Program-made: the position numbers and the translations under genes
Assembly: GCA_965285935.1 (NCBI GenBank)
Contig: OZ260663.1
Coordinates: forward strand, 16,244,001-16,308,000
Length of the DNA: 64,000 nt
DNA from: Ophelia neglecta
Lineage: Eukaryota
Direction of reading: 5' to 3'
In this document: positions 5,601 to 55,396 of the stretch, piece by piece
How the letters are laid out: each line of letters starts with the position of its first letter
Numbering within the stretch: position 1 is the stretch's first letter
Notes under the pieces: model-generated
Databases searched by the model: none
Told to the model about the DNA's origin: nothing
What the model saw: the letters and a program-made list of their open reading frames with translations, nothing else

Positions 5601-7988
5601 CACTTGATTCATATTTATTCACAGGTTACATTGCAGTTGCAAATACAATTTAACCTGTGACTGCTAAAAGCCACTACCATTCCCTAATCATATAGCTGCA
5701 CCTCAAGATGCCTTAAGTCTTATGATTCAAAAGCAGACTTTGCAGGGTCATGCAATGAACAAGTTCAGCCCCAGCATTAACAATAATTCGCAATCTTGTT
5801 GCCATATATTTGAGCACGTCTCCTTTTTTCCTCTACTTGCCATCTGTCAGATGTGATCTTGTCTGTATAATTGGCAAGCCGAAGGCTGTGGCAAATGTTA
5901 ATACATTACGATCTTACGCTATAAGTGTTAGAGAAGGAATGAGATTATGGCCATAAATGTGAATTAATTCCAAGAAAATAATACCAGTCGAGTACTCTAA
6001 GACACGCAGTGCTCAACATTAAGCATTGCTTACTACACCATCTTGGTAAAACACGATTTTTTTAAAGAGACTGTCCATTCATCTGTAAAACAGGCTTAAA
6101 TTTGGAACGTGTCTCAACATGGGCGACTTAGGGTATACCGATGAAGACCATTGCGCTTTTGTGTCTAAAGTAGGCTGTGAAAGAAGCTATTTAAAACCAG
6201 CCACATCATGTATATGTACAACTTGCTTGATAAGAAAAAATATCAACGGATTTTATTTGAAACACTACAGCGTATATCTTTTCACTTGCAGAATTAAACC
6301 AAAATCGTCCTACCAAGGTTTGAATTGACCATTATTCACCAAGAATGCATAAATCACATCAGACAGCATATACTCCAATAAAACCTATCCGATAAAAGCA
6401 ACTGACAATAAACTATCGTAGTAATATGCAAAAATTGGCTTATCAAAACGACTCCAAAACTGCAAGTGACTTATTCTCAATTTACATTGAAAAAAAATCT
6501 TCCATAGAATATCCTCTATCAGCCATGACACTGTCTGCGTCCACGCTGGTTCTATGGTCTGATGCTATAGATTATGGTACATGCAGGAAGAAGAAGATCA
6601 ATGGCCATGTCCCACCGATGTTGAATAGTAGGACGGGTTTATGATGACAAGAAATAATCTATGTGTCCTTTTGAGTATAAAATCACGTGTGTGTTGTGCA
6701 TATACTTTAAAGGCACCTAGTTCATCACATTGTAAATATAATCCGAATTTTTTGACATTTACAGTGGTACTATGTGTATGTTATTCCATGTGTTTAAACG
6801 AAATTAGCATAACATACACGAATACTTGCAATGCAGACTGGAACCAACAGGCTGTGTTGGTTGAAATAACCAGTAGTGATTGTTACTATTAATATACGAA
6901 AACACATTATCTTGCCTCAGTTATTTGAGGAATTTGTTTTTCCCTGATGCATAACCCATAGGATGATAGACAGAAACACAAGGAGGATGGGTAAATTAAT
7001 GTATATCATTTAGTATTTTGTAGACGGCCACGTCGCAAACCGCCACTAGAACGTTGCCGAAAGACATGTTCTGATTACTCTACAAGGGTGTCCCAGATCA
7101 CTCCTGAGTGCGAATTTTCAGAAGCGAACCCCAAAACCAACATGTTAAATTGAATCAACCACTGTGTATATTTGAACAAAAAGGAAGAGACTCCGTGCCA
7201 ATATGAATTGGATCCCACGGAAATTGGCCCTTAATTCGTCTCCTGTGTTTATAGAATAGGCTTGTTGACACTCGTGTGAAATAAAGTGAAAGTGGTAGCC
7301 TTTTTCAAATACCGCCCTACATAGATTTTGACATTTAAATGCTTAATATATCAGATCTGACGCGTGTCTTGTGCCTTGTGTTCATACAATGAAGTAAATT
7401 TCAATAACTAATGCTAAATCACGTGCACTGAAAATTGACTTCGAACAATGTGTATTGGCCAGTTTGCACAAGTTTTTCACATGAGAAAACTAAAAGCAAT
7501 GCTTTCAGAACAGTGTTACCACCAGTACTTCCCATTCAGTTGATTCAATTAACACTAAGAGTACTTATTGGAAGTGAGCAATTGGACGCTAGTTTTAAAC
7601 ACCATTCAGCCTAGTCGCAGGTCCAATGGATCCTCTTGATGAAATATGTAAGTTCTAGTCGCCTCAATAAGTTAGTTGCCTATATGTTAGATGTGTGAAT
7701 TTAGGAATGCGCCGATCTGGTCTATACTCAATGATCCCTTACTTTAAAGTGCATGATAATTATTATTGGCCATGGCTTTAATAGAGCCATTAACTAAATT
7801 GCATTTATAACATACCTGCGGACTTTCTTTCATCGTATCACCGTGTCATTTCGCATGTCATGTCGTATGTGATCTAGCCAAAGCAGATACAGCAATTAAA
7901 TTATATTTATAGCGGCAACTAAAAGCTGTGGGTCTTAGCGCTAACAAACATTAGCATGCACCTTCTGATTGACCATTACTCGTGTATA

Positions 7989-8165
7989 CAGTGAAACCTG
8001 TGCATTAAGACCACCCAAGGAACTGGAAATGGTTGTCTGATTTTGGAGGTGGTCGGTTTAGACTGGTTATTTCACATTAGAAGTAAACAGCATGGTCCTT
8101 ATTTTAGTGGTCTGAATTGACAGGTGGTCTGATAATAGAGGTTGTCTTTAAGACAGGTTCCACTG
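7989..8165 (+). mobile_element. Family A MITE (pogo/Tc1-mariner-like, ~178 bp)
   Basis: TA|CAGTGAAACCTG...CAGGTTCCACTG|TA; internal GACCACC/GGTGGTC repeats; same sequence recurs about 10 times in the window. Confidence 0.85.
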
Positions 8166-11100
8166 TATATGCTCTTTGCAACTCGGGTGGCCATGCACAT
8201 TCTGACAGCGTGTCTAGTGTGCGTCGGCGACCTGAGAAAATTAAAGGCATCAGAGAAATTATAGCCTTGCCGTCATCATTCATCATACATTTTAGTTTTA
8301 AATCAGTCTCTTTTCTCCCCAAGACAACAGTTAAGGGTCGATAACATTATCAATACATCAGCCGTAGAACTCTCCTATGAGCGAGGATTATATATAAGTA
8401 CGCTTTGGGATCGTTAAAAGTCAACCATTCTTTTTTTGTAATAGATTCTTGTAGTGAGACGCTTGGTCTCATTTAATAGCTTTGCTGTTGTACGAGGGGG
8501 GGAGGGGGAGGTGGGGGGTGGGGGGTCGGAGGGGGTCGGAGGGGGGGGGGACCCATGGCCCGGTTATTGGAAGAGGTCAAAAGTTTCATGATTAGTTTTG
8601 TCAATATGATTAGCTGGTAAACACATTTATCGGTCTATATTGGTCTAAGTTCGAGTCCAGCTTCCACAATGTCCACTTAGTAAGAGTGAAGAGTAAATAA
8701 GCAATTAATCCAGATTTAAAGGTTAAAAACACTTCTAAAAACCGGGAGCTGGAGATTACTAACCCTGAAGGTCATTCTGACAAAACGCAGGAGCGATAGC
8801 CCTTAAATGATTGACTACTTTAAGGAGTCATAGCCTGGCACTCAAAAGTGGAAGTTTATTTCTCCGGAGAATGTTATTTACGATCTAGGCGATCATCCCT
8901 GTCAAGGTTATGTATAACGAGTCCGTCGCTGGAGCTGTAAGCTGGAATATTTTTGATGGTGGCTGCAGGTCGTAGAAGCTGTTGTTCGGTTCTACTTATA
9001 CGCAAATCTAGGATATGAATAATGATCATCTTCGTCTTTCTGTTTATCCCGTTCATAAATCTAGCTTCTTTCTCAATTTTTCTTAATATTTTTATTAAAA
9101 ATGTTTTCGGCGAAGTTTTATGTATGCATATTGGTTGACTGTATCTTTTGGTAAGATGGGAAGGTCTTGTGGTGAGCGGTTCTTATCGAGAAGAAACAAA
9201 AAGGGAAAAATATGAATTGTTAAGCTCTATTGCTTTCAGTTCTGAGGACGCAAGAAAAATAGCAGCAAGTGTCTCCCATCCCCTGCCAAGTCAGTCAATG
9301 GCGAGTGACAAGCCGCATTTGTCACACGGTTGAATTTATTCTACTTAAACTTGTGGTTCTAGTCACCGAGTACATTTCACATTCTTGTGGAGGAGTTGGA
9401 AATAGCATATAAAATTACCTTGTCATTGATACCGTTCAACACCATCAGACTTCAGAAGCAGACTTCAAGTCTGTCAGTTAATATGAACAGTAGCGATATG
9501 GCTGATTCCTTTGTATTCACACTGACACTTTAAGCAATGAAACGGATGCAGGCCTCCTCCTGACCACTCTTCCTTTCTTTCACAAGCGTTTTTAAGAGTT
9601 CATTTTCTGATGGGAGCGTGTTGTTCTTGAAACCCGTCTGTTACTATTAGATCCGCGCCAACTGTGGCGTGTGCATAGTGAGCGCCAATTTTAGGGGCGA
9701 CTGACTGAAGTGCCGTGTGTGAACACAGTACACCAGTTACCACTTGGCTGCAGTGTGGCAAAGATATTGAAAGCAATCAGATCTGTCACTAAAATTGCCT
9801 ATAGGACTATGCGTGTTAACTCCTGTGATGAGAGGACTGCCTCGTTTCACATTTAAGGTACTTTATTTGTTTCTTATACCACCTTGCCTGCCGGGACAAA
9901 AGCTTCATTATATTTATTATCTGCATTTAAACATTTGATTATGTAGCCTTAACAGTGCCGGGAATATCTTACTACACGATGAATACTTTTATTGTTAAAA
10001 TCAATATACTTACTACTTGTACCAAGCTTTTGAACATTTGTGATTTTGCAGTGAGCGATAATGTAGACATATATTAGAATGTGTTCAATATGAATGTTAT
10101 GCCAATATGATTTTACATTGACAATTGACAATGACACGAATAATGGGAAACTCGGTGTAGTCAGTAATAGTTTGTGAGCGTGTGGTAGTGATTAGGCCTT
10201 CACAAGTTGGTCCCGGCCTCAGGCATGGCCGTTTTCTCCGCACTTTGTTCTCTTACATTCGGACGCTGGTAGAATCTTTGATGGAAAGTCACACAGGGTC
10301 ATGTTGTGTTTACCCGTGGCCAATTACCGACAAACTCACCCATTTATCGCTCGGGTGTTGGATACATGTTACACGTTAGGCCAAATGGGCAACATGCTGC
10401 CGAACAGTAGATTTAACTCGCTCAGCATTCATCTGCACAAACGAGAACAACACGTATCGACGGGTTGGTGCCACAATTCGATTTACACAACCGATCCCTG
10501 CCGTGAATACGCCTGCAGAGTAGATCTGGCCCATTTCAAACACACTAAAGCATCTATACCATGTGCGGTCAGTTAGGCTAAACATTTCTGGAATTTGCGA
10601 TGGTAATTCCGAACAAGAATAACATAGATATTGTTTATCCTCGCTGCAGACAAAACCGGCAAAGGCCAATGGCAATCTCGCGGAATCAATACGGCGTGAC
10701 TGTGAAATGGGAGAACCATGGATCAGTATACTGTGGAATAGTGAAATCAGGGGTGAAAAGATGAGTCACTGCACTTGTCTATCATTGGCAAAAACCAGGG
10801 CGGATCCCAACCGGTGAATTGGCGAATAATGGTGAGCTCATCCACAGTACTCGATAGTTAGAATCTCTCGTCGGTAGGGTTACCTTCACCTCGAAAAATT
10901 GTTTTTAACGAACCTGAATATTTCATTTTATAACCAAGTTGTCAGGCCATAAATGAGACTTATCTTATATGTTTAGTATTTATCAGACATGGAATGAGCT
11001 ATTATGCTAAACGAATGACGTTTGCCCAGTTTGTGTCACTGTTCAATGCAAGCCTAATCCCAGCATAAGTGACTCAAGCAGCTGATTGTGACCACGTTTC

Positions 11101-13524
11101 ACGTGCCCTTCCCAAACAGACGGCGGGACATTGACACCATACACAGTTCATTGCATGCACCATATCCGAAAAACCCTAGAGCCATTCGACATTAGTATAG
11201 AGTTTCAGATGGGATATATTCTCTTTATCAGCAGGTTAGTAGCCTGCCCACAACTTGTGCAGGGATATCGCCACCAAAAGCTACCTAGTACTTGTGTTTA
11301 AGGCATCGTATATCATGTCGATGAGGGTACTGGGAGGTCGGGTCGTGATATTACTAAACAAGGATTTACCAGCCAAGATCCAGTATATATTGAAGTGCTG
11401 TGTGTACGGACACCAAGTCAAAAGTATACATATTTCTGGTTACTTATTTTGCTGCGGCGCTTAGCACATGAAGGGATTAAGATCCATTAAATATTACTCA
11501 GGAGAAGTGGTGTGCATATACAACCTTATCTTTGTTTTTTTTATGTCGGTCAATTGTGCGGCTTTAAACATATTGTTTTGAGGTTTATAATGCTATCTCA
11601 TATCAATGCATAGTGGCATTTATATTAGTTCTGAGTGTGTACTGTTTACAAACTAGGATATTTGAAGTGTTCAACAAGCACTTTACTGTTATAGATTGCC
11701 AGGTTAAGTCCAACTTCCACATATTTCCTCCCTATGGTTCTTGACAAAAATCTGATCTTAATCAAACCATTGCGACCAACTTATTACGTGAAATGGTTAT
11801 AATTAGGCCCTGCTGAGGTCAGGCCTGTTGTTATTTCACTCTCCATTGACAGGTGTCAAAGGCCCCTTCTTTTATCAGCGTTGCTATGGAGCCACTATAG
11901 GGGCTTTTACAAACGCCACTTTATAGCATGTCACTTTTATATTAACGAGGTAAGGCAATTCACACAGCCCCTCTGACTGATTTGCATTGAATGCAAGGAC
12001 CCCTATAGTTCATTAAGAAATGATAGATAAGCGTGTTAATATAGAAAATGCAAGCTGTCTATCGGATGATGCTTGCTATAACAAGCTAACCTGTAGTTTG
12101 TTGTTGTAACTATACTCATGGTCAACACTCATTATACAGTATGCTCTGTCAAGGACCTGCAGTCAGAGCCAAGACCTTTTGATGGTAAGGAGCCCCATGA
12201 GAGGATTCCTTGTTGACAAATTTAACGGATTTCAACAAGTTGTTCACACTCTATTGATCTGTGCCAGCCAGAGTTGACAGTACAATCACACTGTTTACGT
12301 ACACCTAGATAAAACTTAATGGCCTAGTTTATTATGTTGTTTAGTTTAAATACTTGTATTTTACAATATATATATATGCAATTGAAACACATAGTCATGT
12401 TGTGTCGCGGCATAAATGATACTTTAAGTTATACATACGACATGCTTAGCAATTTGAAAGGAAGATGACGATAAACTTGATTTTTTATTACAGACGTCAT
12501 TTTTCGAAATTTTATGTCACACGTAACCATTCTTCGCTTTTGGAGAATTGACCTTTTTTTACAAATAATTTGGTAAAGTGCCATCTAAAGAACGAAGTCT
12601 ATTGTTGTTTTGTGTATAGCTAAAGAAATATGAATCGCATTGTCAACTGTCTGGTACAGTTCAAAGACACACCTTGGTATAACAAGCAGTTTTTAGCTGA
12701 TACCTGTGAACCGCATTGTAACAAAACAATGCTTGGGTCACGATGTTGACATAGATACTTGTGAGCAAATGTATTATTCTGCACATACCACACTGCATGG
12801 CAACTGCTACCGAAAAAAAAGTTGCTCACTGCATGGTAGAATGAATACAAAGCAAACGGTGCTTCGGGTGAAAATAGACCCAGTTTAGGACATGCGTTTT
12901 TATCTGCATTAATAAATCACAGCGCCAAAACAGCAAAATAGATCTATTGCGGTGTCAACATACTGGGCGATGTATAGCAAATGGCACAATTTAATTGAAA
13001 CCTCGCCGGTTAAGTTCGCCATTACTTGCTGGTTATATTCTCCGTGGGTACCCACAGACTAATACCGTATCGCTGGGCGGTTGAAGATTTTTTTATTGCG
13101 GTCATTAAAATGGCCTCGTGAATGCTCATCTCATTATTTAAGTTTATATAATCACACAGGATGAATAAGTCTTGGGTTTCTATGGTATCAATTATATCAG
13201 GCCGAATGGAAAGCGGATTTAAGAAATGAATTAGATATCAGTATTTACAGGAATTTTGAATTTTACGAGTTGTTGAGAGGATTTTGTGTGATTGCAAATT
13301 GCTTCACCCATTATCGCAGTATTCCAGCGGCTGTTTACTTAACACTACAGTATATATGCCGAGCATGCAGCACGAGTCTCGCTTCAGTGTTGCCGGACTA
13401 CCACGCGTATATAGCATGACAGTCCATAGCATGGGTGGTCCTTCTATACCTTAACATTGGTTGAATTCTTAAATATTGTTTAAATGGGCCAGTTATCAAG
13501 CACGCACAACAGTCCAATCTCGGT

Positions 13525-14110
13525 GAGGGGGGGGGGGGGGGGGGGGGCAGGGGCGGAGGGGAGGGGAGGAGTCCAGCTGGGGACCAATGCCATTTACAAT
13601 CTAAGTCTTTTCTCGTTTGACAGTTTGACAGCTGTTGCCCTCCCCCTACCTTTAGGTACAATCCTAAAAAAATCCGAAGATCCTCCGAAGTCCTTACCGC
13701 CACAGCCGATCGTCCACCCATTCCACCTCCTCCTCTATCTAGGCCCCACAACTTATTGTTCACTGACTAATCCATCGCGACTTAATATATTAGACCCCCC
13801 CCCCCACCCCCGTTCATTCCCGCGCCCTCCTTAACCGTCACTCTTCTCGCCCTCTCATTTCTACTCCATATCAACCCCCCCCCCCTCCCACCCCCCCCCC
13901 CTCCTTCAATCGCCTTCCAATCCAACGACTTATCGTTCACTGACCAATGCACAACTTCATTTCTACTCCATATCAACCCCCTCCCCCCCTTATCGTTTTC
14001 GCGCTCTCCTTAACCATCATCTCGCCCTCTCGTTTCTACCCCATGTCACCCCCCCCCCCTCCTCCCTCCTTCAGTCGCCTCCCAATCAAAATTGACCCTG
14101 CAAACCTACT
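13525..14110. repeat. G/C-homopolymer-rich low-complexity block with internal duplications
   Basis: Long poly-G and poly-C runs; TTTCTACTCCATATCAACCCC occurs at ~13858 and ~13960; TTAT(T/C)GTTCACTGAC(T/C)AAT at ~13752 and ~13929. Confidence 0.7.
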
Positions 14111-16100
14111 CTGTTCTCCTAGCCCACCCAGACTTGAGCTAACACTCACGCCTTTGATCTAAATTTATGACCAATCCGGTTGATATAAAATCAATGTGTA
14201 TATTACGTTTAATTAAATTGATTATTTTACAGTCCAGCCACTATACATTTGGCAATCTATCAACCCTATTCCAATTTCCGAACCCGTGATTGGGATGCGG
14301 CTGGAAAGGCCAAATTGATTAACCTTTGGCACATAGATGAGTCTTTCGGCCAACTATTAGAAAAACTATCATATATCAAAGTATAAGCAAATATATGCGT
14401 TGGTAATGGAACGCTTTGTTTGCGTATAACATTGCTTTACATATACGTGTAGCTTGAAACGCCCTCAGAACATACTAGATAATGACAGTAACAGTTCTGC
14501 ACTGAGCTGAAACTGGTCATTGTAACAGGCAGATACACCAGATTTCCTCAGAATCCGATTATATACATTCGCTTAAAATGAATAATCCGCATTGCTTATG
14601 GCACAATCACTACACAGCTTGTGGTACTTGTATTATTTTGAATACCATCTATGTGGCGGTTGCCACCTTTCATTTCTTGCCCTTAATAGAAGACTAGTAG
14701 AAAGCATATGTATATTTATAGGTTTATTTTATTCAACTATAAAGAAGACGAAAAAGTTGGTAAAAAGCTCTCTTTAGCACTCTGACATAAGCTTTTTATT
14801 TTCCCAACGTAGAAGTAAGATATTATTACTCATACCAGTTATTTAAAATTAGACAAAGACGACGAAAGGGAGCACATGCTTATCAGAGGAATATTAATAA
14901 CGTATCGAATGACGGATGATTTATTGGATATATAACTAAATTCACAGCACGTAAACTAATGTTATTAAATGACATTTAGCTGTTCGAATACAACCAGGTC
15001 ACACAAGTGCGTTTGAAGATATGCATGATTACACGTACATCGTGAGTTAAAAGTTAATAAGAGTACCAAAGAGCAGTAGTCAAACTAGTTCTGGCCACAC
15101 TATCCACAAATGGGGTTCTACAAATATGCGTCAAATTGTATGAAATAATAATTACCTGTATTGCAGGATTGTAAAGGCGTTTCTCTCTAGATAGTTTGTT
15201 CAGTGAGCGCGTGAATTGCTTAGTTAACTAAACAAAACTATGTTTACACTGCAACGAAGTCAAGTGATAAATACACCGGAATATACGAGTTTTTTTTGCT
15301 CGTGTTGTTTGCGCATTGGCATTTATTTTGGTCGTGTGAATCTATAGTTTACACAGCGCAGTCGATTTATTTATATATATATATATGAATGTAAATATAT
15401 GAAGATATATATATATATGAATAAATCTATGTGCCTGATACGATTCACATGAATCGAATACTAGCCTAGTGTGATAATGCATTAAGACACACTTAGGACT
15501 GCGCTTTAAGTGCCCATGAAATATGATACAATATACCTGTCAATCATCTTGGTAAGGTCGGCCAGTAACCACCGGTTTGCTCTTCAAACATTGCACCTGT
15601 TCGCCGAGGCAAGAGGATTTCATCCATATCCATAGTTATTATTGATTATACTCATGGTAAAGTGAGCTTAATTGTATATGTATATACAAATTTAAGGTTA
15701 GTCCGCCTTGCAGATTCGCCTTTGTAGAAAAGCTAAGACGGGCACAAGAATTAATTTAGGAAATTTTAATGAAACCATTTTGATTTTGCATAATATCCAG
15801 ATTAAATGTACAAAGTTTTTAAAACATTTAAGACGCAGATCCGATATAAGAGCATTAAGTGAGCAGCGATATTATAATCAAGTAATGCTGCCCTTTTATC
15901 CCTAAACAAAGAGTATATACAGCCAGTTGATCTTTTCACGGAAGGTAGCATATCAGTAAAGTGGTCTCAGCGCGCCAGTTTTAAGATAAAGCATGATTGG
16001 TTTACGCCATTACCCTTTCTTCCTTTCTGAAAACTTAAAATCAATTTTTATGTTGTTTTCGCAAGTCACATTGCTTCGTATTACCGTAAACGAAATCCAA

Positions 16101-16125
16101 GCTAACAGCACTTTCATTTCTTCAG
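16101..16125 (+). other. Probable 3' splice site opening the coding exon of the ShKT gene (5'UTR intron)
   Basis: Branch-like GCTAAC (16101-16106), pyrimidine tract CTTTCATTTCTT and CAG ending at 16125, 351 nt upstream of the start ATG. Confidence 0.55.
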
Positions 16126-16476
16126 ATGGACGTAGAAGCTAAGTGGTGAGGAAGCAAGAAGAAAACCGGATTATGGTTAAAAACGGCCAGTAGATGGTCG
16201 TTTAGTAGACGGGATTATCGGTGTAAATTACGTTTGGATACCTAGTGAAGTGCATGTGTACAACGTGAATAACAACAACGGGTAGATTTAGTGAATTATA
16301 CATATAAACAATCTGAGAAGGGATTCGTTACGGGTATTCCTGTGATATTATGGACACGATACGGATATGACCAGAAATAAAATTGTATATGATCTTTCAA
16401 GGTTGGATAAGATGACCGTGGATTGTGTGGTATATTTGTAAGAGAAGGTCAGCCGAAGGTTAGGCACGTTTCGGAT

Positions 16477-18489
16477 ATGGGGCGCCTTAAGTTTGTCTTG
16501 GTGTTTATCGCCAAGATGGCAATCCTTAGCCAAGCCTTCTCATGTGATTTCCCCCTATTTATGCAAACGAATGGAACCCAGCGCGATTGGCGCATGCGCA
16601 TCAGAGATCAATACACGGAGTTCAGTTTGCAAATATTTGTGGAGAAAAACCTTATGCGCACAGTGTCGTCTGACGTAAGCAGCACGTCACACACGCGCGT
16701 CTGTCTCCAAGGTTATGGAGAGAACAAGTTCCTAGTCGCACACGAGGAGTCCGGACAACAGCGAAATCGTTACACGTGTGTCCAGTTCTTGCAGCGCACC
16801 AAAAATGTTGTGCAGATAAAAGAGGCGCCAGTCAACCAAAAAATGGATAGATCTTTATGTGGTGATGACGCCCTGCAGCTTAACCATTGGCTGATGATTG
16901 ACAAGACACACATCGTCACCGACGAAGCCATATGCGCGCTACAGGGTGGATTCAGTATCAGAATATTTGACAAAGTGCGTCACAAAGGGATTTGCGATGG
17001 TTATAAAGGAGAAACCCGGATGGAAAGTGAGTGCGTCAAGGGGGACGGCTTATTGTTCTACTTCAGGCACCAAAATTGTGTTCCGGAGGATTTGTACATG
17101 TATAGTACGCAGCGGACCATATGTCTGGCCAATTGGAAAGAAGGCATTCACAACTTCATCCTCCTGCGTCACGACAGGTTTCATTATATGTGGATAGTGC
17201 GTTACCCCTCATCGCTTAGAGAGAGTTTCGTGGCTTATCTTTTTAAGGATCTGGTTGCAGACCCAAGCGACCAGATCGATGGAACCCGTAACTATCTTCG
17301 CCTGGACACTGTTCGCGACACGCCCCGGCCAGTTGGGTCACTTTGTGTGGACGATTACGAAGTGTGCAGCGTCTGGCGGGAGCCCTGCACATCGGGTCCA
17401 ACTATGGCCTTGACCTGTCCCCGTACGTGCGGTGTTTGCAATGCCTCGCGACCTTTGGTTTGCAGATTTGGGGATAAATTCCGTGGAACTTGGTTTGACG
17501 CGGCGCACGTAAACAATCTCGCTCTTACTGTTAATACCAGCACCATGGAAGTACGAGGTGAAGTCACAGAGCGATTTCATTGTATCCGATGGGATCAGAC
17601 TGACAAACCAAGTGTTAAGTTTGCCAAAGATGAGATGCTAGTCACTGAATTTTTTAACGGCTGCCGTCCAAGATATACATGTGTGCGATTTTTACAAAAA
17701 TCTAGTTCTGTAATGTTTATGAAACTGAGCCAGAGTTTGACCTGGCCCTTCACACAGACTGTACAGGAGCCTATCGACTGCTCCAAGTTCAACTTCGACC
17801 ACGAGGAAAACAGTGTGCTCCCAAACCGGTTTAGACACAGATATTTTAAATTATTATACAGTGCGAATTCAAACCACCCGGTGCATTGTGGTCTCCCCGA
17901 GGATTTGAAAAACTACGTGGTGACCTTCCGTGACGGCACTGATTGTCTGAGTACCGTAACAGAGACGTATAATAAACAAGAGATTGTGGTTAACCTCTCC
18001 AACTGTACTACTAACCCTCTGGGATCATCAACATTCACGTGTCTGGAATCCTCCAAACTTCTACCCGCCACTGACATGCTAGTAGTTACACGGACATCCC
18101 GACAGCCTTATCAAATATACTGTTGGGTGTTCCCAAAGAGGCCCAGGACTACTTTCTACATCCTGGCGGGTTCACAGTGCAATGAGGCTGCGCGAAGACG
18201 CATCCGCAAAGATAGACTAGTTCCCTTGGCGTTTTTCAGTAAACACCGGCGGAGCATTATACATGAAGAAGTGACGAAATACTTAACCACAACTCTCCCT
18301 AGCCAGCCTCATATTTCAGATAACGAGGCCGAGGTAGAGGTCACTCGAAATGCTAAAAATAGAACTGTTGTCATGGGCAACTTAACAGAAACTGCGAATG
18401 ATGAAATTAATCCTAGTCCCTTTGTTATCGTTGCAGCAGTAATATTTTTCGCCGTTTTTCAAATTCCTTGCATATGTAAATCTTCGTAA
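16477..18489 (+). CDS. Intronless 670-aa Cys-rich predicted type-I membrane protein with ShKT domain and DUF7042/7043/7044-like modules
   Basis: Longest ORF in the window. First in-frame ATG at 16477 gives signal peptide MGRLKFVLVFIAKMAILSQAFS|C. Modules start CDFPLFMQ..W, CALQGGFSI..CLANWKEG, CRFGDKFRGTW and CGLP. ShKT motif CVDDYEVC-x6-C-x9-CPRTCGVC at 17344-17439. A Ser/Thr/Glu stalk precedes the TM segment PFVIVAAVIFFAVFQIP and tail CICKSS*. The DUF assignment is by motif resemblance only. Confidence 0.9.
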   Translation: MGRLKFVLVFIAKMAILSQAFSCDFPLFMQTNGTQRDWRMRIRDQYTEFSLQIFVEKNLMRTVSSDVSSTSHTRVCLQGYGENKFLVAHEESGQQRNRYTCVQFLQRTKNVVQIKEAPVNQKMDRSLCGDDALQLNHWLMIDKTHIVTDEAICALQGGFSIRIFDKVRHKGICDGYKGETRMESECVKGDGLLFYFRHQNCVPEDLYMYSTQRTICLANWKEGIHNFILLRHDRFHYMWIVRYPSSLRESFVAYLFKDLVADPSDQIDGTRNYLRLDTVRDTPRPVGSLCVDDYEVCSVWREPCTSGPTMALTCPRTCGVCNASRPLVCRFGDKFRGTWFDAAHVNNLALTVNTSTMEVRGEVTERFHCIRWDQTDKPSVKFAKDEMLVTEFFNGCRPRYTCVRFLQKSSSVMFMKLSQSLTWPFTQTVQEPIDCSKFNFDHEENSVLPNRFRHRYFKLLYSANSNHPVHCGLPEDLKNYVVTFRDGTDCLSTVTETYNKQEIVVNLSNCTTNPLGSSTFTCLESSKLLPATDMLVVTRTSRQPYQIYCWVFPKRPRTTFYILAGSQCNEAARRRIRKDRLVPLAFFSKHRRSIIHEEVTKYLTTTLPSQPHISDNEAEVEVTRNAKNRTVVMGNLTETANDEINPSPFVIVAAVIFFAVFQIPCICKSS

Positions 18490-19833
18490 CATTTTTTCCT
18501 TCTCACAAACTGCAACCAATATATCATGTACCCACAATTCAAAACAGAAATAATGACGATCGCTGCCAATGATATTATGGGCAACTCTTAAACCTAGCTT
18601 TGTGCAGAAGGCAAGATAAAGCTTTTGTGATCTCTCAAGGAAAAAGGCGCGTTAACGTACGCTTAATTACTCGAATGACATGTATTGTGAAGTGCTTGGA
18701 TCTTCAGGGGCAAAGTTTTATATAACTGCTGCAATAGTATAATTTTATATATTGTCATACAAATATGTAAGACATAAATATATGCTTACTTGCAAGCAAG
18801 GGCGGCACTACAGTGTAGGAATGCATCAACATATTCATGGGAAGGATTGCTTAGTGCTAACGTTATCACCTATTAAAAATATATTATCACTAAGTTTGTT
18901 TCTATACAGAACATAACTTATTATGGTTTGCCACAATTGAAGACAATGCAATTATAATTGGTTGTTTTCCTTCTTAAACTCAACTATTAGAATATTCCAA
19001 AACGCATTACTACACTTTAGGTGATACCTCCAGTCTGAGTATGTGATCAATGCCTGAGAACTTCTATGCAATATATGGTTCTAAACCTCAATGTTGACTT
19101 TCCAAGTACAAAAGTCTGAGCTTTTCACTTAGTAGATGAACTGTTGGCTTATTCTATCTAGTTTAATAATCGTTCGCTTTCCTATACATTATAACTATAT
19201 TTCTTTTTTGGGAGGATGAGTCCGGCAATATTAATAATACGTTATTAATATGTGATAGTTAATGGACCCGTTCTCAGTCTGATTGCTAGACTATATTGCC
19301 AAATACAAAACCAACTTATTGTATGGTGCTCAAAATGATTTATACACAGTCGTTCAACTCGGACAAACCTGATTCAATCAATAATTGAACCCAAAACGTG
19401 CATATTGATTCACTTTTCCTTTTTTGTACAGTTTAATTATGATATTACCATTCAGCTTATTGTAGTATGTTGATTCGTGTGCGACACTGTTGAAGACAGA
19501 GCGTTGTGTGTTGTGTGTATCTCGGATGTACATTAAACATTTATACCAACAGCGCTTTCTATTTATTTTCTTTGTAGATACATTGCACAAGTATTGAGTC
19601 TGCATTGTCTATGTTGAAAGCACCTTCATATATAATAATTGTAAAATGCTCAGCTGCTGGTACCTATTAAGCAAATATCTCATTTGAGAAATAATTTTAA
19701 GCATAAAAGTCGCTTATCTATATTGTTTAGATAAAAAAAAAGTAACTTACAGTTCCTTATTGTAAATATAAGTGAACTGAAACAACACTGCATGTCATTA
19801 AATAAACAAGAATCCGACTACTAGAAACAATTA

Positions 19834-20016
19834 CAGTGAAACCTGTGAATTAAGGCCACCCAAGGGCCTGGAAAACACTGGTCTGATCTTGGAGGTTGTC
19901 TGTTTAGACAGGTTATTTGTTTAGCCATTGAAAGTATACAGCATGGTCCTCATATTAGTGGTCTGAATTGACAGGTGGTCTGATAATAGAGGTGGTCTTT
20001 AAGGCAGGTTTCACTG
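19834..20016 (+). mobile_element. Family A MITE
   Basis: TA|CAGTGAAACCTG...CAGGTTTCACTG|TA; perfect 12-bp TIR and TA TSD. Confidence 0.88.
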
Positions 20017-22118
20017 TATTAACCTTAAACATTGTTTTTCCCATATCGATGCCGTTCATTAGAAAGGTTCCTTAATTAAGACATGACTGGGTCCTAAATA
20101 TGTTGTATGGGGGTGGATGGCTTTAAAGTCTTTCTAAGACATGACGTCACGTTTAAGGAGGAGTGTGATTTCATATGGAAAGTAGTGATGCGTAGGGATC
20201 TCGCTTACAGGAAAATTTCGCAAAACTGGAAATTTTATGCGTTCATCGCAAGATATCTGATTTTACTGTATGCGAAACAAAATACGGAGAGGAAAAGTGT
20301 AGGCTGTGTAAATAATGATAGAATAAGCTCTCATAATCTATTGACTAAGCATGATATAGTCCCATTAAATCAGGACATTATAAGCATTCAAAGGTTCCCG
20401 TCAAATTGAAGAGAAAATGGCATTAAAATGTGCTCGATAGCGATGTGGGTGGTATTTCTAGACGTGGCCTATAATAAAATCTAAAAATGATACTTTTTAT
20501 TTGCATAATTATGTACCACTCTTCCACCGACTGCTTTATTCATACTAAAGACCATACACTTAAAAGTACTTTACTTTTTATGTCTCAAATAAAGTGGCTT
20601 TCACATACAGAGAACTGACGGCAAACAATAATGTTTATCTGGCTAAAATATGCTTGACACTACACCGTTTTAAATCCAATTTTCCCAAACCACAAGAGGG
20701 GATAGGGGAGGAGGTGGGATTGGGGTAGCCCCGGAAGGAAAATATGATGTTACAACCAATTCCGTTATTCAAAGTCACTAGCAAATATGCCTTTCCACCT
20801 GCACTTCAAATGTGTGGAGTTCTCTGGAGGAAAGTAACATTGTTACCATCAAGGATTGTTCTAGCGATTCGAATAAGCCCTGCGCATTGCGTTTATTACA
20901 CCAGAGGGAATTGTGCCATTATCAGGCTAACTCCAGGGCTGTTTCAGGAAATGCTATTAACTCCATAAACTCTTAATCGGTTTTTAATCAGGACTAAAAA
21001 GCTTGATCGATTTAATTGGCTAATCGGGGTTTCTGGACTTGGTCTTAAACCTACCCGTTTCAGTCTTAAACTTATTCCTATTCAATGAAAACAATGAAAA
21101 AAGTCTCTCAGAAGTATAGTTATTAATTAGGACTGACATTCTAGACCCAATAAGTATTTTCCTATAAATATGAACCATAATTTTCCGCCTATTCCTAATT
21201 TAGTATAAAAACATCAATCAATCAGTAAATAACAACTGAACAGGCTTAGTATGGCTTAGTAATTTAAAAAAAAAATTGACGGCATTCTTTTTTGTCGCGA
21301 CAAATTTAATGCGATTTCAGCTCATCGGAAATAGGTGACTCTAAATCCAAAAACCTAATACCGCTTATAGAAAACGGGCCCGGTAGATTGTCCGTTAAAG
21401 AGGATTGGGTGAGAAAAACGGGTTAAGCAAGTTGCAAAGCTATCGTTCCGCATTTACGCATCTGATCAAATAAATTCGGTTTATATGTTTGGCACAGTCA
21501 CCATATTTACACAACCAAATATTACGTGACATCAAGACAAATACATGTTACTCCACCAGAGTGGTTTGGGTGCTCATCCACTCTGTGAGATATTCGAGAT
21601 AGTTTAGTGTTAGTCTTTTATGTATTGTCATTTTACGCCTATAGCTAATCCTAGTGTCGATGCAATACAACTTGATATTAGGATAACATCGTCAGAAATA
21701 TATATATACTTCGAAATAACAGATCTAGCAAATTTGAGTACATTCAGTGAAATATTTGATCGCATTGATCTATTGCATATACAATGTATTGCAAATATAA
21801 TGTGTTTTGCAATTTGCTAACCTCAACACTCAAGGCATCTTAATTAATACAAGTAAGTGTTATGGATGTTTTAATGAATTACTATTCTCAGTTCAGATCA
21901 CAATAGGCTGATTTATCAGCAGACAGAAAACGAACGCAATACAACAAAGATGTTATTTTGATTCAATCGCACGTATTTATGCGGATATTACTTTACAACA
22001 ATGTCTTTAGCTAAGCCTTAGTTTTAATAAGAAGCCCCGAGCAACACGCCTTTTACAACCCATTGGTTTCCACGTAGTAAAGGTATGATCATCGAAATGT
22101 GCCCACCCACTGACCTAT

Positions 22119-49827: not shown

Positions 49828-51178
49828 ATGGAATTGGCCAAGTACTATTACAGCCGGGTGACTAAGGACACCCCGTCCAGAGAGCGCCTCGCCCTGTCTG
49901 AGGCTCTGGTGACTGACCTGACCGGGCAGTTAGACCGAGGTGTGGAGTACGACCGGGACGCCGTGGCGGAGATCGCTCGGGTCATGCTGAGTGTGAACCT
50001 CGACTCCCTGCACTCCACCCCCGAGCTCAGGGACTGGCTCCTGTCCCAGGAGGTCCGGGATCTGGTGTGGAGGCTCTCTGCCCAGGAGGGGACCGCCTCG
50101 GCCGTCCTCCAGGGCATGTTTGACGGCGTGGCTGAGAGGAGTGTGGGGTTCGATGATATGTGGACGTGGAGTACCGTGTTAGTCAGCTCCTGGTTTCTCG
50201 GGACAGACGGCTCCGTGGTGCCGACATCTCCCGGGTTTTTACTGCTACTTTTCGCATTCTGCTACCGATGTGGCTCAAGACAGGCAGATTACTGTGGACA
50301 ACGCCTTATGAATATTCCCTCCTCAGACGAGCGGATGCTCCCTCTGGTGACAAGGACTCTCCATACAGAGACCTGGGAGTCTCTGGTACAGGGGAACAGT
50401 GCGGGCGACACGGTTCTCCACATAGCCGCGTCCCTAACCCGCCTTCCTCGGGTCACCAGAACCCTGCTGTACCAGACAGACATAGATGTTAATGTGAGGG
50501 GTAACACTGGTAAGACTCCCCTCACACGTCTCATTGGGGGCTCGTCCGTGCTGTACAGTATACACCTCCCCCCAGCCGAGGTCCTACTAGAATACCCGGA
50601 GACCGACGTCAGTCTGTTAGACGACCGGGACAAGACCGTGTTACACTATTGTCTGGACCATCTCGGAGACTCCCCGGCGTCGGTCACAGTGGCTCTGGCA
50701 TTAATTACATTAATATGTCAACATTCCTCGGTCACCCCCGACATGATAAGCAGAGCGCTGGAGAGCCTGTTAGAGTGGGAGGTCTCCCCAGGACTGCGGG
50801 ACCAGTGTTATGGTGTTATAGTAAACCTCGCCACCAACAATAACTATGATATCAACCGTCCAGTGAGAGGCGGGATGACAGCATGCCACCTGGCGGCCAC
50901 ACAGGGGCATTACGCTATTGTGGAAAAGTTCATGGACATAACAGGGCTTGACCCGAACACGCCGGACAGTCTGGGTAACACTGTCCTCTACTACGCATGC
51001 GCCAATTTCCCACCAGAGTCCGTCATGTCTGTAATAGACCACCCAACGGCGACCTGGGACTTCACCCACAAAAACAAAGCAGACCAGACCATCCTGGACT
51101 ATTACAGCCGGTTTCCGGACAACAAGAAAGATCCCACATTATTAGGGTACATTGAGAAATGCTTGGAAGACACAAAAG
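49828..51178 (+). CDS. ANK-caspase coding exon 1: helical N-terminus plus ~6 ankyrin repeats (450 aa)
   Basis: Motifs GDTVLHIAA, DVNVRGNTGKTPL, DDRDKTVLHYCL, GGMTACHLAATQGHYAIVEKFM, DPNTPDSLGNTVLYYAC, KNKADQTILDY; acceptor at 49808; donor AAG|GTAAGG at 51178. Confidence 0.9.
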
Positions 51179-54100
51179 GTAAGGTTGATCAGTATTTTCA
51201 CTGACCAGGAGTAATGTTAAGACCAATATGTCAATGTTTATTACCAAAACCGGCTTCCAGAAATCCGGATTAGCAAGTTAAGGACAATTAAGCACTTGAT
51301 TCCTGATTTTAATCCGAGTCATGAGTTAATACCGCTTCTAGAAATCGGGCCCTGGGTGATGAAAGGCGAGGTAAAGCAAGCCTGGCAATGAGATGATTGT
51401 AATAGTATGAGCTGCAATTGGGTATGGTCGGATTGGGTAGCTTATTTAGTTCGTTGGGTAGACGGAGAGGCAGGTAGGGAATGGGGTCGTGAGAGGTGGT
51501 GTTTGGTGGGATGGGTTATGGTGGTATGGGCCCTAAGCTGGTAGTGACAGGTAGACGGGGAGGCCGATAGGGAATGGGATGGGATGTGGTGGCTTGGGCT
51601 CTAAATCATTGGACTCTAAGAGGTGGTATAAGTTGTCTCGGTTGTAGTGGAATTGCTGATATTAGGAAAATTGTCTTTGGACCTTTGCTGATATTAGCCG
51701 CCTGTCCTTCGCTATTTGAAACAGTTTTCTACTAGAAAAATAGTACAAAATAATATTATTCACCGTTGACTCTTTGCTTTTGTCGGATTCCAGGCGTACG
51801 ATGGGTTCCCTTCCGACCTAGTGATCACATTGATGTCAAATGTTCTACCGCTGAACACTATGCGGACAGAGCAGACGACTGGGTACGTGATACGACTCTT
51901 AAAGGTGTTTAATTCAGCTAACAGAGAATGCAATGTACATTGAGTAGGTCTGATAATACCGTTTGATATATATGAAAAACCAGTGGTGGATACCCGTCAG
52001 ACAAAGACATTGACCAAGAATAGTCCATAAAATAGTTACGAACTCTTCAAGAACCACCAGTCGCTGCACGAGACAAATACAGACGTATACAGGTCTGATA
52101 ACGATACATGATATGTACTATGACATATACAGGTTCAAGCCAAATTGGATTATTGGTTTAAATTGCAAATAAAGTAACCATAAAACAAAACCGTGCACTT
52201 AACACCTGTTCTTAAACAGATAGCACCTTGGAATAAGGGACACCAATCAATTGAGGACAAGTATTTCGGATCTCATCTTTTTAATGCTCGTGAAAACTAA
52301 AGAGTAGTAAAAAGGGCCACATAGGAAAGATGAGACCTACTCGCTCACTTGGCACTTCCAACTTACTGTAATAGCTTTTTATGCAGTTGAACCTGACATT
52401 TCAGAGACGAGTAGTTTCTATTCTTTATTGATGAAGCACAAGGGCATACCTTAGTTGTGATGGAGCGGTATTGATTCCAATTTTGCAGACATATGAGATG
52501 GGTCATGCGTACAAGGGTAAGGCTGGTATTATAGCGATCCACACCTTCTCCGGTAACATGAACAACCTACTTGGCTATAAGCAGGATACGGAGGACCTGG
52601 CGGCCTTGTGGGACGGCCTCGGGTTCCAGGTGGTCGTCCCTGAAAGACGGAACCCGGAAGGAGGCTGTCTTACCGCCGAGGTATGAGTAAAGAGATATAG
52701 GTTTTTGGGTAATACCTCCACAAATAATTCTCTTTTTATTATATGTTCAATATGTTTATTATATGTTCAAATTAACAAAATGTAGTGCATCAGAAATATG
52801 ACGCTTAGTTATTAAGCAGTGGTGGATCCAGGATTTCAGGAGGGGGGGGGGGGCAAATTTTCCAAGGTTGACAAGGTCAATGTCTTTTTGCCCCCCGCCC
52901 CCCTCCTAAATCCGCCACTGTTAATATAATAATGATAATGGGTAAAGTTATGAACTCGTTCCCTTATATGAGTTATCATTGGATCGCGCCTCTAGGAGAT
53001 ACAGTCAGCGGTAAAGCAATTCGCCAGAGAAATCCTCGAGCAAAGTGACCAGTGTGCCGTGCTCTGTATCCTGAGCCATGGAGGCGAGGGTTTTCTGTAC
53101 GGCAGTGATGGTCACACGGCAGACACAAACCAGCTACTCCAGGAACTGGACAATATCAATTGTATTCAGATGGCGGGAAAACCGAAGGTCGTCATCATTC
53201 AGGCGTGTCAGGGAGGTAAGTTTTCAGATGGCGAACAGTAGGAGAGGTATTTGTCATCCATTTGTGTTAAAGATAACCCGTGTTGCCCCGGAATTCAAGC
53301 TAATTAGATATACATTATGCCATCTTTTGGAATAGCCGTTTTTTCACAAAACTGGGCACTACTTTCCAAAAAATAATCATTGCACACTCAGCCGGTATCT
53401 ACTGACTACCGTTGCCAGGTAACCCCACTTTCGTAATACGACCTGGATTAATTCAAATTAAAGTCGCCTTCAACACTAAGTATATCAACTCGCAGCACAT
53501 GCATTTGAAAAGATAACTTTGGACTGTGTTATGAGAATAAGGACAGCCTGTCTAATGGACTACAGCATACTTTTAACACAGGCGATCATAAAAGGTTTAC
53601 TCAGCTCAAGTTTAGTAAAAAAAATACAAAACTTTAATTCGAATATTTGCAGCTTTACTTAATTTGCAAATCGTTTGAAGGCCTCTGCACTTTGCAACAT
53701 ATATGTACTGTACTATGTAAGCCAGTGAGTGCTCTATGTATCCCTTAGCTACCTGATTTGCCTTATAATACATACATTGGGTTCAATGTACGTGTGTATG
53801 TTTACTGGGCGGATTTCGTTCTGTGTCATATGTTCTATACGAGTAACCAAAATGTCAAAGCAAAAAGGCAGATACATCTTTTGTGAAATTAGCTTGTTGA
53901 TTTTTACTTTCAACGAGGAACAGCGCACGTACACTGTTAAAAATAATGGAACAAGCACCATAGGATAATCAGAAATTACCAACTTATTACCTTCATGCTG
54001 GAAACATTATTTGATTGAATTACTCCATAAGACTAGCTGCTGGCTACCTGCTACCCTGGAGCTAGCGTACTACCACCTAGGTTTTAGCTCAACTTTTCCT

Positions 54101-55396
54101 AGCCCCTACCGTGGTGCTACATACCTAACGCCTAGCTGCTGCTTAACCACCACCTAGCTGCTACAAACCGGCTATCTAGAAAAAACGGAAGTGGATACCC
54201 GGCAGATAACACCAGATCATAAAATCTATAATAGGCCATTGATCGGTCTGAAATAATCTGAAACTCACAGTTCGGTAATACTGGTTCTGTAATACCTAAC
54301 TAGCTGTTACCTAGGAGCTATCAGTGTCGTCTGGTAACAAGGCAGCTGTTGTGATTTGGAATATTTCGACTGAGAAAGTAGCTCCCTGACTGTTTTCAAT
54401 GGCCAATGGCGACACATTGATATATTTACCATTTCAGACTGGGCCGATCACGGTGTCCACTTGCGTGCAGGCAGTAACCCTCTCCCCCAGGCCGCGGCTG
54501 GAGGCTATTCAGAAACACATCTACCGTCCGTCTCAGACACTATCGTCTGTACTCCTTCAAGTAGAGGTAAATAATCATTTATTAAAAGAAGGAAGTGTTA
54601 TGAAAGAGTGACATAAATAACATCATGTTATAAAAAGCGAAAGAATACCATGCGGAAAAAAGCAAGTAGTTTTGTTACGAATAATTATCAAACATTTTCC
54701 CCCGGACGGTTACCCTTGTGAACCTTAGCTGTTAAAATATTGGTCATTTTTAACATTCTTTTTTACGGTTAACCATTTTTAGGTTATGTGTCGTTTGTAA
54801 GCGATAGGAGCTTTTACATTAGAACACTTGTAAAGATTTTCGCTCAATTCGCTTGTACAGAAGATGTGTACAGATTGCTTACAATGGTAAGATAGTTTGG
54901 TTTTACTTCTATTCATGTTCTTCTACCGTGTAAAAAAAGCAGAGTCTATCCGGCAGACATGCCTAATCACGAATAACCCATCAGTTTGGTCCGAACTTGT
55001 ATAGAAACCTCCAGCTGCAGGTTGCCAATATCAGTCCCCAGTACCTTAGCTTTAAATAAGCTTGCAAAGGGACAACTTAGGAATTCTTATTATAAATGTT
55101 TCAGTTTGAATGTTAATAAGAGGCTCTAGAAGTAAATAGTGTTTTACTCAAAATTTTTCCTGGAATAAAAATAATTTTCATGCAATGTTATTTCGGCTAC
55201 ACAAATATTTGATAATTTGTGGACATTTTCGCAGGTAAATCGAGAGGTCAGTAAAGATACAGTGCGTGCAATTACACCTGGGTCTACGATTCCAACGGAC
55301 CACAAACAGATGCCACACTTCGGCAGCACATTGAGGAACACGCTGTACTTCTTCCCGTGTCCTGGAGGTAAGGACGGAACCGACTGGCAAACATGA
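49828..55396 (+). CDS. Ankyrin-repeat/caspase (peptidase C14A) fusion gene, ~748 aa (756 aa with the alternative last exon)
   Basis: join(49828..51178,51794..51882,52489..52680,52996..53215,54438..54566,54783..54886,55235..55396). All introns are GT-AG with compatible phases (1,0,0,1,1,0) and no internal stop. Contains ANK repeats, then YEM..KG..F..D..L..LGFQV, ILSHG, GKPKVVIIQACQG, LPSVSD..GYVSF, VNREV and KQMP..STLRNTLYFFP. Confidence 0.85.
51794..51882 (+). CDS. ANK-caspase coding exon 2 (linker GVRWVPFRPSDHIDVKCSTAEHYADRADDW)
   Basis: Acceptor TTTGCTTTTGTCGGATTCCAG, donor TGG|GTACGT; 89 nt converts phase 1 to phase 0, exactly as needed to join the flanking exons. Confidence 0.75.
52489..52680 (+). 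CDS. ANK-caspase coding exon 3 (start of large subunit)
   Basis: TTTTGCAG|ACA...GAG|GTATGA; TYEMGHAYKGKAGIIAIHTFSGNMNNLLGYKQDTEDLAALWDGLGFQVVVP...LTAE. Confidence 0.88.
52817..52920 (-). mobile_element. Family B MITE, internally deleted, in a caspase intron
   Basis: TTAAG|CAGTGGTGGATCC...AATCCGCCACTG|TTAAT; 104 bp. Confidence 0.8.
52996..53215 (+). CDS. ANK-caspase coding exon 4 (catalytic His and Cys)
   Basis: CTCTAG|GAG...GGAG|GTAAGT; EIQSAVKQFARE..CAVLCILSHGGEGFLYGSDG..NCIQMAGKPKVVIIQACQG; His codon 53077-53079, Cys codon 53206-53208. Confidence 0.92.
54438..54566 (+). CDS. ANK-caspase coding exon 5 (intersubunit linker, start of small subunit)
   Basis: ATTTCAG|AC...AGAG|GTAAAT; DWADHGVHLRAGSNPLPQAAAGGYSETHLPSVSDTIVCTPSSRG. 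Confidence 0.85.
54783..54886 (+). CDS. ANK-caspase coding exon 6
   Basis: CATTTTTAG|GT...ATG|GTAAGA; GYVSFVSDRSFYIRTLVKIFAQFACTEDVYRLLTM. Confidence 0.88.
55235..55396 (+). CDS. ANK-caspase coding exon 7 (stop at 55394-55396, or donor after 55367)
   Basis: TTTTCGCAG|GTA; VNREVSKDTVRAITPGSTIPTDHKQMPHFGSTLRNTLYFFPCPG(GKDGTDWQT*); internal GAG|GTAAGG donor at 55367/55368. Confidence 0.85.
   Translation, partial: VNREVSKDTVRAITPGSTIPTDHKQMPHFGSTLRNTLYFFPCPGGKDGTDWQT

Follow-up and report, generated by a model that had tools for sequence, protein, structure and literature searches.

An ankyrin-repeat caspase gene of Ophelia neglecta with leucine and valine at the sites of the two S1 arginines

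Caspases are defined by cleavage after aspartate, and this preference rests on two arginines of the S1 pocket. Together with a glutamine, the arginine pair makes the basic pocket that dictates Asp at P1. Pseudo-caspases such as c-FLIP depart from this scheme through loss of the catalytic Cys and/or His. Here we describe a gene at 49828-55396 on the + strand of a 64,000-nucleotide stretch of Ophelia neglecta DNA (contig OZ260663.1, positions 16,244,001 to 16,308,000; the whole stretch is called the window and its coordinates are used throughout). The gene carries Leu and Val at the sites of the two arginines, and a c-FLIP-type loss was not found, as the catalytic His and Cys are both present.

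Among individual caspases the closest is caspase-8. It is the best solved relative by sequence (1.6e-26) of the caspase domain of L005, an intronless paralog of the window gene, and the Val described below pairs in this match with the Arg of VSY-R-NP. Caspase-8 is also among the best fold matches, the SHG and QAC motifs are shared, and a dimer through the last strand is modelled for L005. Unlike caspase-8, the window gene lacks death effector domains (DED), has Leu and Val for Arg, an L3 loop that is two residues shorter and a seven-residue insert past the second strand, and the body of its linker is free of Asp. A caspase-8-like fold with altered active-site surroundings is likewise what c-FLIP and the pseudo-caspases have; in the clade described here, however, the catalytic Cys and His are invariant.

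Caspases with an ankyrin arm, the ANK caspases, have been published in parasitic flatworms and, among annelids, for a single gene of Alitta virens, beside DED caspases (Genome Biol Evol 2024, PMC11463336). They are presumed there to be apoptosis initiators, the annelid case is called probably convergent, and the text never mentions arginine, a pocket, an active site or cysteine. The window gene is like them in bearing an ankyrin prodomain in place of a CARD or DED on a C14A domain. It differs, when compared with their description rather than their sequences, in belonging to a family of about 48 copies and in being without both S1 arginines. Ankyrin-prodomain caspases were already known, and it is the predicted non-basic S1 that appears to be the new variant. 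A full-text search of open-access papers for caspases without these arginines returned nothing relevant.

Other members of clan CD cut after residues other than Asp. Within the clan, a hydrophobic P1, Leu, is reported for just one family, the C80 proteases of MARTX and the large clostridial toxins, whose S1 is lined by small hydrophobic residues (PMC4357240). C80 is the nearest model for how the window protein may work, as a clan-CD His/Cys protease with a hydrophobic S1 lining from the same structural regions as predicted here. That said, C80 is bacterial, monomeric and activated by inositol hexakisphosphate, and with no detectable sequence relation the likeness is one of mechanism only. Paracaspases and metacaspases (C14B) have acidic pockets, with which they select Arg or Lys (PMC4357240). 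These too are caspase-fold proteases that depart from Asp by change at the same S1 positions, as is predicted here, but the pocket residues of the window gene are uncharged and its domain is by sequence a true C14A caspase.

The S1 pocket and the gene that encodes it

The first-pass annotation of the window, made from the letters alone, had placed Leu and Val at the two arginine sites, had described L3 as two residues shorter, and had SHG, QAC and the pocket Gln retained. All of this is borne out by the codons and by a multiple alignment. Leu is encoded by cta at 52567-52569 (motif NMNN-L-LGYKQD) and Val by gta at 54797-54799 (GYVSF-V-SDRSFYI). We used MAFFT to align L005 and a second intronless paralog, L006, with L045, a canonical paralog from the same genome, and with eight CARD or DED caspases; the window exons were added as fragments. 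Leu lines up with the Arg of R-x-G-[TS]-x-x-D and Val with that of S-[YWF]-R. These are the Arg179 and Arg341 sites in caspase-1 numbering, and we take them to be those of Arg260 and Arg413 in caspase-8. Every one of the canonical caspases aligned, the eight and L045, has Arg at both sites. For example, L045 (C2:37.18 Mb) reads P-R-KGTDID, GYLSW-R-NTKKGS and QACRG. The L3 loop of the window gene is two residues shorter than in the canonical caspases. Where a basic S1 pocket has Arg179, Gln283 and Arg341, the window gene has Leu, Gln and Val, and the Gln alone is kept. The catalytic His lies in SHG and the catalytic Cys in QACxG, as in other caspases, and the oxyanion Gly is retained as well.

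Pairwise and single-exon comparisons were less informative about these positions. In the HMMER alignment of L005 with caspase-8 no gap is opened across the exon-A region and the Arg179 site is out of register; this alignment was set aside there, and the multiple alignment was therefore used for both sites. Searched against solved structures as single exons, exon A had no match and exon D only one to caspase-9, with E of about 1.

Contigs from three public sequencing runs span both codons, and none of the differences listed for them falls at either. This is weak independent support, since all three runs are DNA of one sample.

The two codons are part of a gene of seven exons and 747 codons with no in-frame stop. 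Each of the six introns has GT-AG ends and the phases match, as read at the splice sites in the sequence. The exons were mapped under the guidance of the two intronless paralogs and by direct reading of splice sites, and all sequence searches with the gene were run exon by exon. The exons are:

Exon 1, 49828..51178, + strand: start codon, helical region and ankyrin repeats (the prodomain); ends in phase 1; open frame of 458 amino acids
Exon 2, 51794..51882, + strand: short linker exon that joins the ankyrin arm to the caspase domain; tblastn match to L005 and L006
Exon 3 (exon A), 52489..52680, + strand: the large subunit begins here; carries the Leu codon 52567-52569, at the site of Arg179 in caspase-1 numbering
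Exon 4 (exon B), 52996..53215, + strand: His 53077-53079 (SHGG), Gln 53200-53202 and Cys 53206-53208 (QACQG)
Exon 5 (exon C), 54438..54568, + strand: intersubunit linker and start of the small subunit; 70% identical to L005; a low-confidence stretch in the paralog model
Exon 6 (exon D), 54783..54887, + strand: L3 loop; Val codon 54797-54799 at the Arg341 site
Exon 7 (exon E), 55235..55396, + strand: C-terminal strand of the small subunit (dimer interface); TGA stop at 55394-55396; 68% identical to L005

By sequence, the window gene is an intact 'ANK caspase', with an ankyrin-repeat arm followed by a caspase-8-like C14A domain. Exon 1 matches the Pfam families Ank_4 (7.3e-14) and Ank_2 (1.3e-12), shares 46-48% identity with the N-terminal parts of the intronless copies and ends in the donor AAAAG/GTAAGG. 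Exon 2 lies between the acceptor CCAG/ and the donor TGG/GTACGT, and exon 3 is 77-90% identical to its paralogs. Peptidase_C14 is found in exon 4 (1.9e-14; 54.4 bits against a cut-off of 21.4) and weakly in exon 3 alone (17.7 bits, under the cut-off, at profile positions 1-43), while the full domain of L005, a paralog with 70-81% identity, scores 120.5 bits over profile positions 1-233. Pfam gives only Peptidase_C14 and ankyrin families, the best matches in the PDB are all caspases, and we found no sign of membership in C80. The order of ankyrin and then caspase is also seen in one open frame of the intronless copies and in contigs from a second organism, described below.

The intronless copies L005 (G000:C1:20.78 Mb) and L006 (G000:C1:20.93 Mb) each have a complete caspase domain within a single open frame; their identity to the window exons is 68-81%. 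Both are broken in the ankyrin part, L005 by a frame change near 2541-2559 and L006 by an in-frame stop at 2467-2469. Contig C9 carries a third intronless copy (G000:C9:56596906-56597592), with an open frame of 734 amino acids.

Relatives of the window gene and the selection on them

Is the loss of the arginines private to this gene? The O. neglecta genome (762 Mb in 223 contigs) gives 70 exon-level matches to exon 4, of which about 48 are at least 49% identical; a search with the Pfam model gives 96. We read out 22 own-genome copies. Position 179 is Leu wherever the exon was found (21/21), position 341 is Val in all 19 copies readable there, and the pocket Gln is kept in 22/22. The catalytic His and Cys are invariant in the 28 exon-B copies from both organisms, as is the Gly after His, and these copies have diverged to about 50% identity. 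The clade is also marked by L-x-G-Y, with Tyr three residues past the Leu, and by an additional Gly following SHG.

The second organism is represented by ENA assembly ERZ25069296, in which six contigs hold related genes, two of them with an ankyrin frame upstream. The best own-genome match of these loci is the window gene's own exon, at 66% identity. Their residues are L, L, L, P and L at position 179 and T, V, V, V and S at position 341, with no Arg at any readable site. The Pro belongs to the copy L055. In two further copies, L014 and L057, the pocket Gln and the Ala before the Cys have changed too, giving NTC and HTC for QAC.

The recurrence of the same residues in 21/21 and 19/19 readable paralogs, while canonical caspases have Arg, means that Leu and Val are not there by chance. 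We reject private decay and sequencing error as their cause, on the conservation in paralogs together with the read contigs. An Arg at these codons in reads or relatives would have spoken against the first-pass annotation; none was seen among the listed contig differences, the readable own-genome paralogs or the second-organism loci.

In a tree of exon 4, which has 69 columns and weak inner forks, a single branch with support of 89/95 separates all 28 non-Arg loci from the canonical caspases. These loci adjoin the canonical own-genome caspase and the DED caspases. The second-organism loci are interleaved among own-genome subclades, and the loss of the arginines is therefore older than the split of the two organisms' loci. 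Leu and Val are, on the sequences compared, the ancestral state of an ankyrin-caspase clade of about 48 copies that is common to the second organism, and not events in the window gene.

Full-length orthologs were not found in either of two wider searches. Representative sequences searched with exon B gave only exon-sized fragments (up to 68% identity) and ordinary CARD or DED caspases, and a word-index search with a 476-amino-acid paralog frame, at E of 1e-10 or less, gave 2 DED caspases. The window gene itself is a lone copy, apart from the tandem clusters of the family.

The first-pass annotation had asked for a measure of conservation and selection, and beside the conservation given above we compared the window gene with its six closest paralogs, using Nei-Gojobori counts that were made per exon and summed. 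The ratio of nonsynonymous to synonymous substitution rates (dN/dS) is 0.15-0.20 in the caspase exons, at a synonymous divergence (dS) of 0.8-1.1, and 0.37-0.45 in the ankyrin exon. These counts show purifying selection on the caspase exons. Decay is unlikely because the gene is intact, Leu and Val are found clade-wide, His and Cys are invariant in 28 copies and dN/dS is low, and a re-lining of the pocket is well supported at the level of the whole clade. The first-pass annotation had also favoured re-programming over decay, and its case against decay stands; its argument from two concordant changes in one open reading frame does not, as the two changes come from one old, clade-wide inheritance and are not independent evidence.

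Fold, predicted mechanism and competing explanations

The fold and dimer were modelled with L005. From an alignment of family exons and canonical caspases, AlphaFold2 gave its domain a mean predicted local distance difference test score (pLDDT) of 79.9 and a predicted template modelling score (pTM) of 0.82, with disorder just in the linker and the first eight residues. The top Foldseek matches of this model are only caspases (caspase-8, -9, -6, -3, -7 and CED-3), with template modelling (TM) scores of 0.69-0.73 per query. For this paralog the model thus has a caspase/hemoglobinase fold with p20 and p10 parts. A homodimer model scored 0.77, against 0.29 for the best control, and passed a mark that is reached by 21/30 proteins solved as one-chain pairs and by 0/23 solved as single chains. 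The runs had at least 38% of contacts in common, with a partner pLDDT of at least 73. The modelled interface is formed by the symmetric last strand, as in caspase dimers, and its residues map to the exon 7 part. Caspase dimers have already been solved, so the pass may be memory on the part of the predictor, and the model shows likeness of the interface to that of caspases, not binding.

We think it rather probable that the window gene is an intact ANK caspase of a conserved clade of about 48 genes, in which Leu and Val have re-lined S1 and which is active without selection for Asp. The clade protein would be an active cysteine protease with an S1 that is uncharged, more hydrophobic and larger. 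Such a pocket would no longer select Asp, and P1 is likely to be neutral or hydrophobic, by analogy with the C80 toxin protease domains of clan CD that cleave after Leu. Activation may proceed as in initiator caspases, where the ankyrin arms are brought together and the domains dimerise through the last beta-strand. The switch would not be a cleavage of the linker after Asp; the linker alignments have no conserved cleavage motif beyond a D-x-G-V turn that canonical caspases also have. Within exon 5 (54438-54538), two Asp lie within six residues past QACQG, in this D-x-G-V turn, and the remaining linker has none.

A wider scenario is one that we hold more tentatively, as somewhat short of an even chance. 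A C14A lineage would have come from caspase-8-type initiators and exchanged Asp at P1 for a neutral or hydrophobic residue, before expanding into about 48 ankyrin-armed genes that form a recognition-coupled protease system. A recognition-plus-effector role such as immunity would, speculatively, fit the many copies and the faster evolution of the ankyrin arm.

Several observations weigh against an active protease that no longer selects Asp, and they are best taken together with the explanations that they would favour. The models above are those of the intronless paralog rather than of the spliced product of the window gene, and the 22 copies read are only part of the clade. Could the protein instead be a catalytically silent scaffold or decoy, which keeps the caspase fold and the dimer interface with a dismantled S1, and regulates canonical caspases or assembles complexes like c-FLIP? 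Both charge-bearing S1 residues are gone, L3 is shorter and variable in length, and the interface modelled for L005 is caspase-like. We regard this explanation as unlikely, however, given the invariance of His, Cys and the Gly after His across 28 copies and of the pocket Gln across the own-genome copies. Known pseudo-caspases lose catalytic residues, and a decoy would have no reason to hold the dyad under a dN/dS of 0.15-0.2. We doubt more strongly still that an acidic P1 is selected after all, through another basic residue (the Arg of SDRSF, or an Arg right after the Val) that enters S1 and restores recognition of Asp or Glu. An Arg does stand three residues past the Val in the window gene (SDR), several subclades have one directly after it (VR..), and counting the window gene and many paralogs together it is found 1-3 residues past the Val (VSDR, VSER, VRNN, VRDG, VRRR); a basic pocket may have re-formed in some clade members. 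But the SDRSF Arg is not a conserved feature, with SNTSF (VSNT) in the next-closest paralogs, VYTT or VYKT in others, and VDHQ, VNNN and VTNS in the second organism. Nor does Arg179 have a replacement, with Leu throughout, and the residue after 341 in a beta-type L3 would, judging from caspase structures, point away from S1.

The remaining objections concern the window copy alone, which could be silent or dying, an unexpressed pseudogene-to-be, whatever the family does. The public runs that contain the stretch are DNA and none is RNA: their contigs come from one sample and have no spliced joints. The copy is alone, outside the tandem clusters, and the family does make dead copies, as seen in the two ankyrin-broken intronless copies and in fragmentary exon arrays. 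A recent loss of constraint on this copy could also have escaped the counts above, because a dS of about 1 is near saturation and a pairwise dN/dS averages both lineages. Yet its seven exons are open, its splice sites are canonical with matching phases and its dN/dS is that of constrained exons, and we consider a dying copy very improbable. The re-lined, active protease is the explanation that we carry forward.

If the wider scenario holds, the clade would give the first case of animal caspases that no longer act as aspartases, and just the second group with a hydrophobic P1 in clan CD. A clade that has lost the S1 arginines and is nevertheless conserved, expanded and selectively kept would demonstrate that animal caspases can be redirected, on the same scaffold, to other cleavage sites. 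It would also call for caution in annotating such genes as apoptotic 'caspase-8-like' genes, or in inferring from them an activity of the DEVD/IETD type. The clade members, two of which are intronless, are ready test objects for which residues set the P1 choice in clan CD.

Duplications, repeats and variation around the exons

Exon-sized duplication is visible elsewhere in the family. The loci L043, L044 and L050 (G000:C5:4.666 and 5.010 Mb) have extra partial pieces like exons D and E (I-CKRIH.IRT) beside intact ones, and these extra pieces in the clusters look like signs of local exon duplication or of dead copies. The closest paralog, L015 (G000:C5:4.67 Mb), has a minisatellite in the intron after exon B, at L015 1800-7049, and the same is found at L043 44-640. 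The units are 57-58 bp long and number about 84 plus about 12 copies. Younger units retain coding sequence for the active-site end of exon B, PKVVIIQACQGGKY, along with its splice donor; the older ones have decayed.

In the window gene, the intron between exons 3 and 4 contains at 52811-52923 a short inverted repeat with runs of G and C, whose arms are at 52831-52857 and 52887-52913. In the three runs the summed contig depth over this element reaches 6,000-22,000, whereas the surrounding sequence has about 10-50, and we therefore take it to be a very high-copy repeat resembling a miniature inverted-repeat transposable element. In the region of exon 1 (49863-51201), about 20 single bases vary among the three runs, all from one sample, and between these runs and the window, and these differences in the ankyrin exon suggest that the locus is polymorphic or heterozygous.

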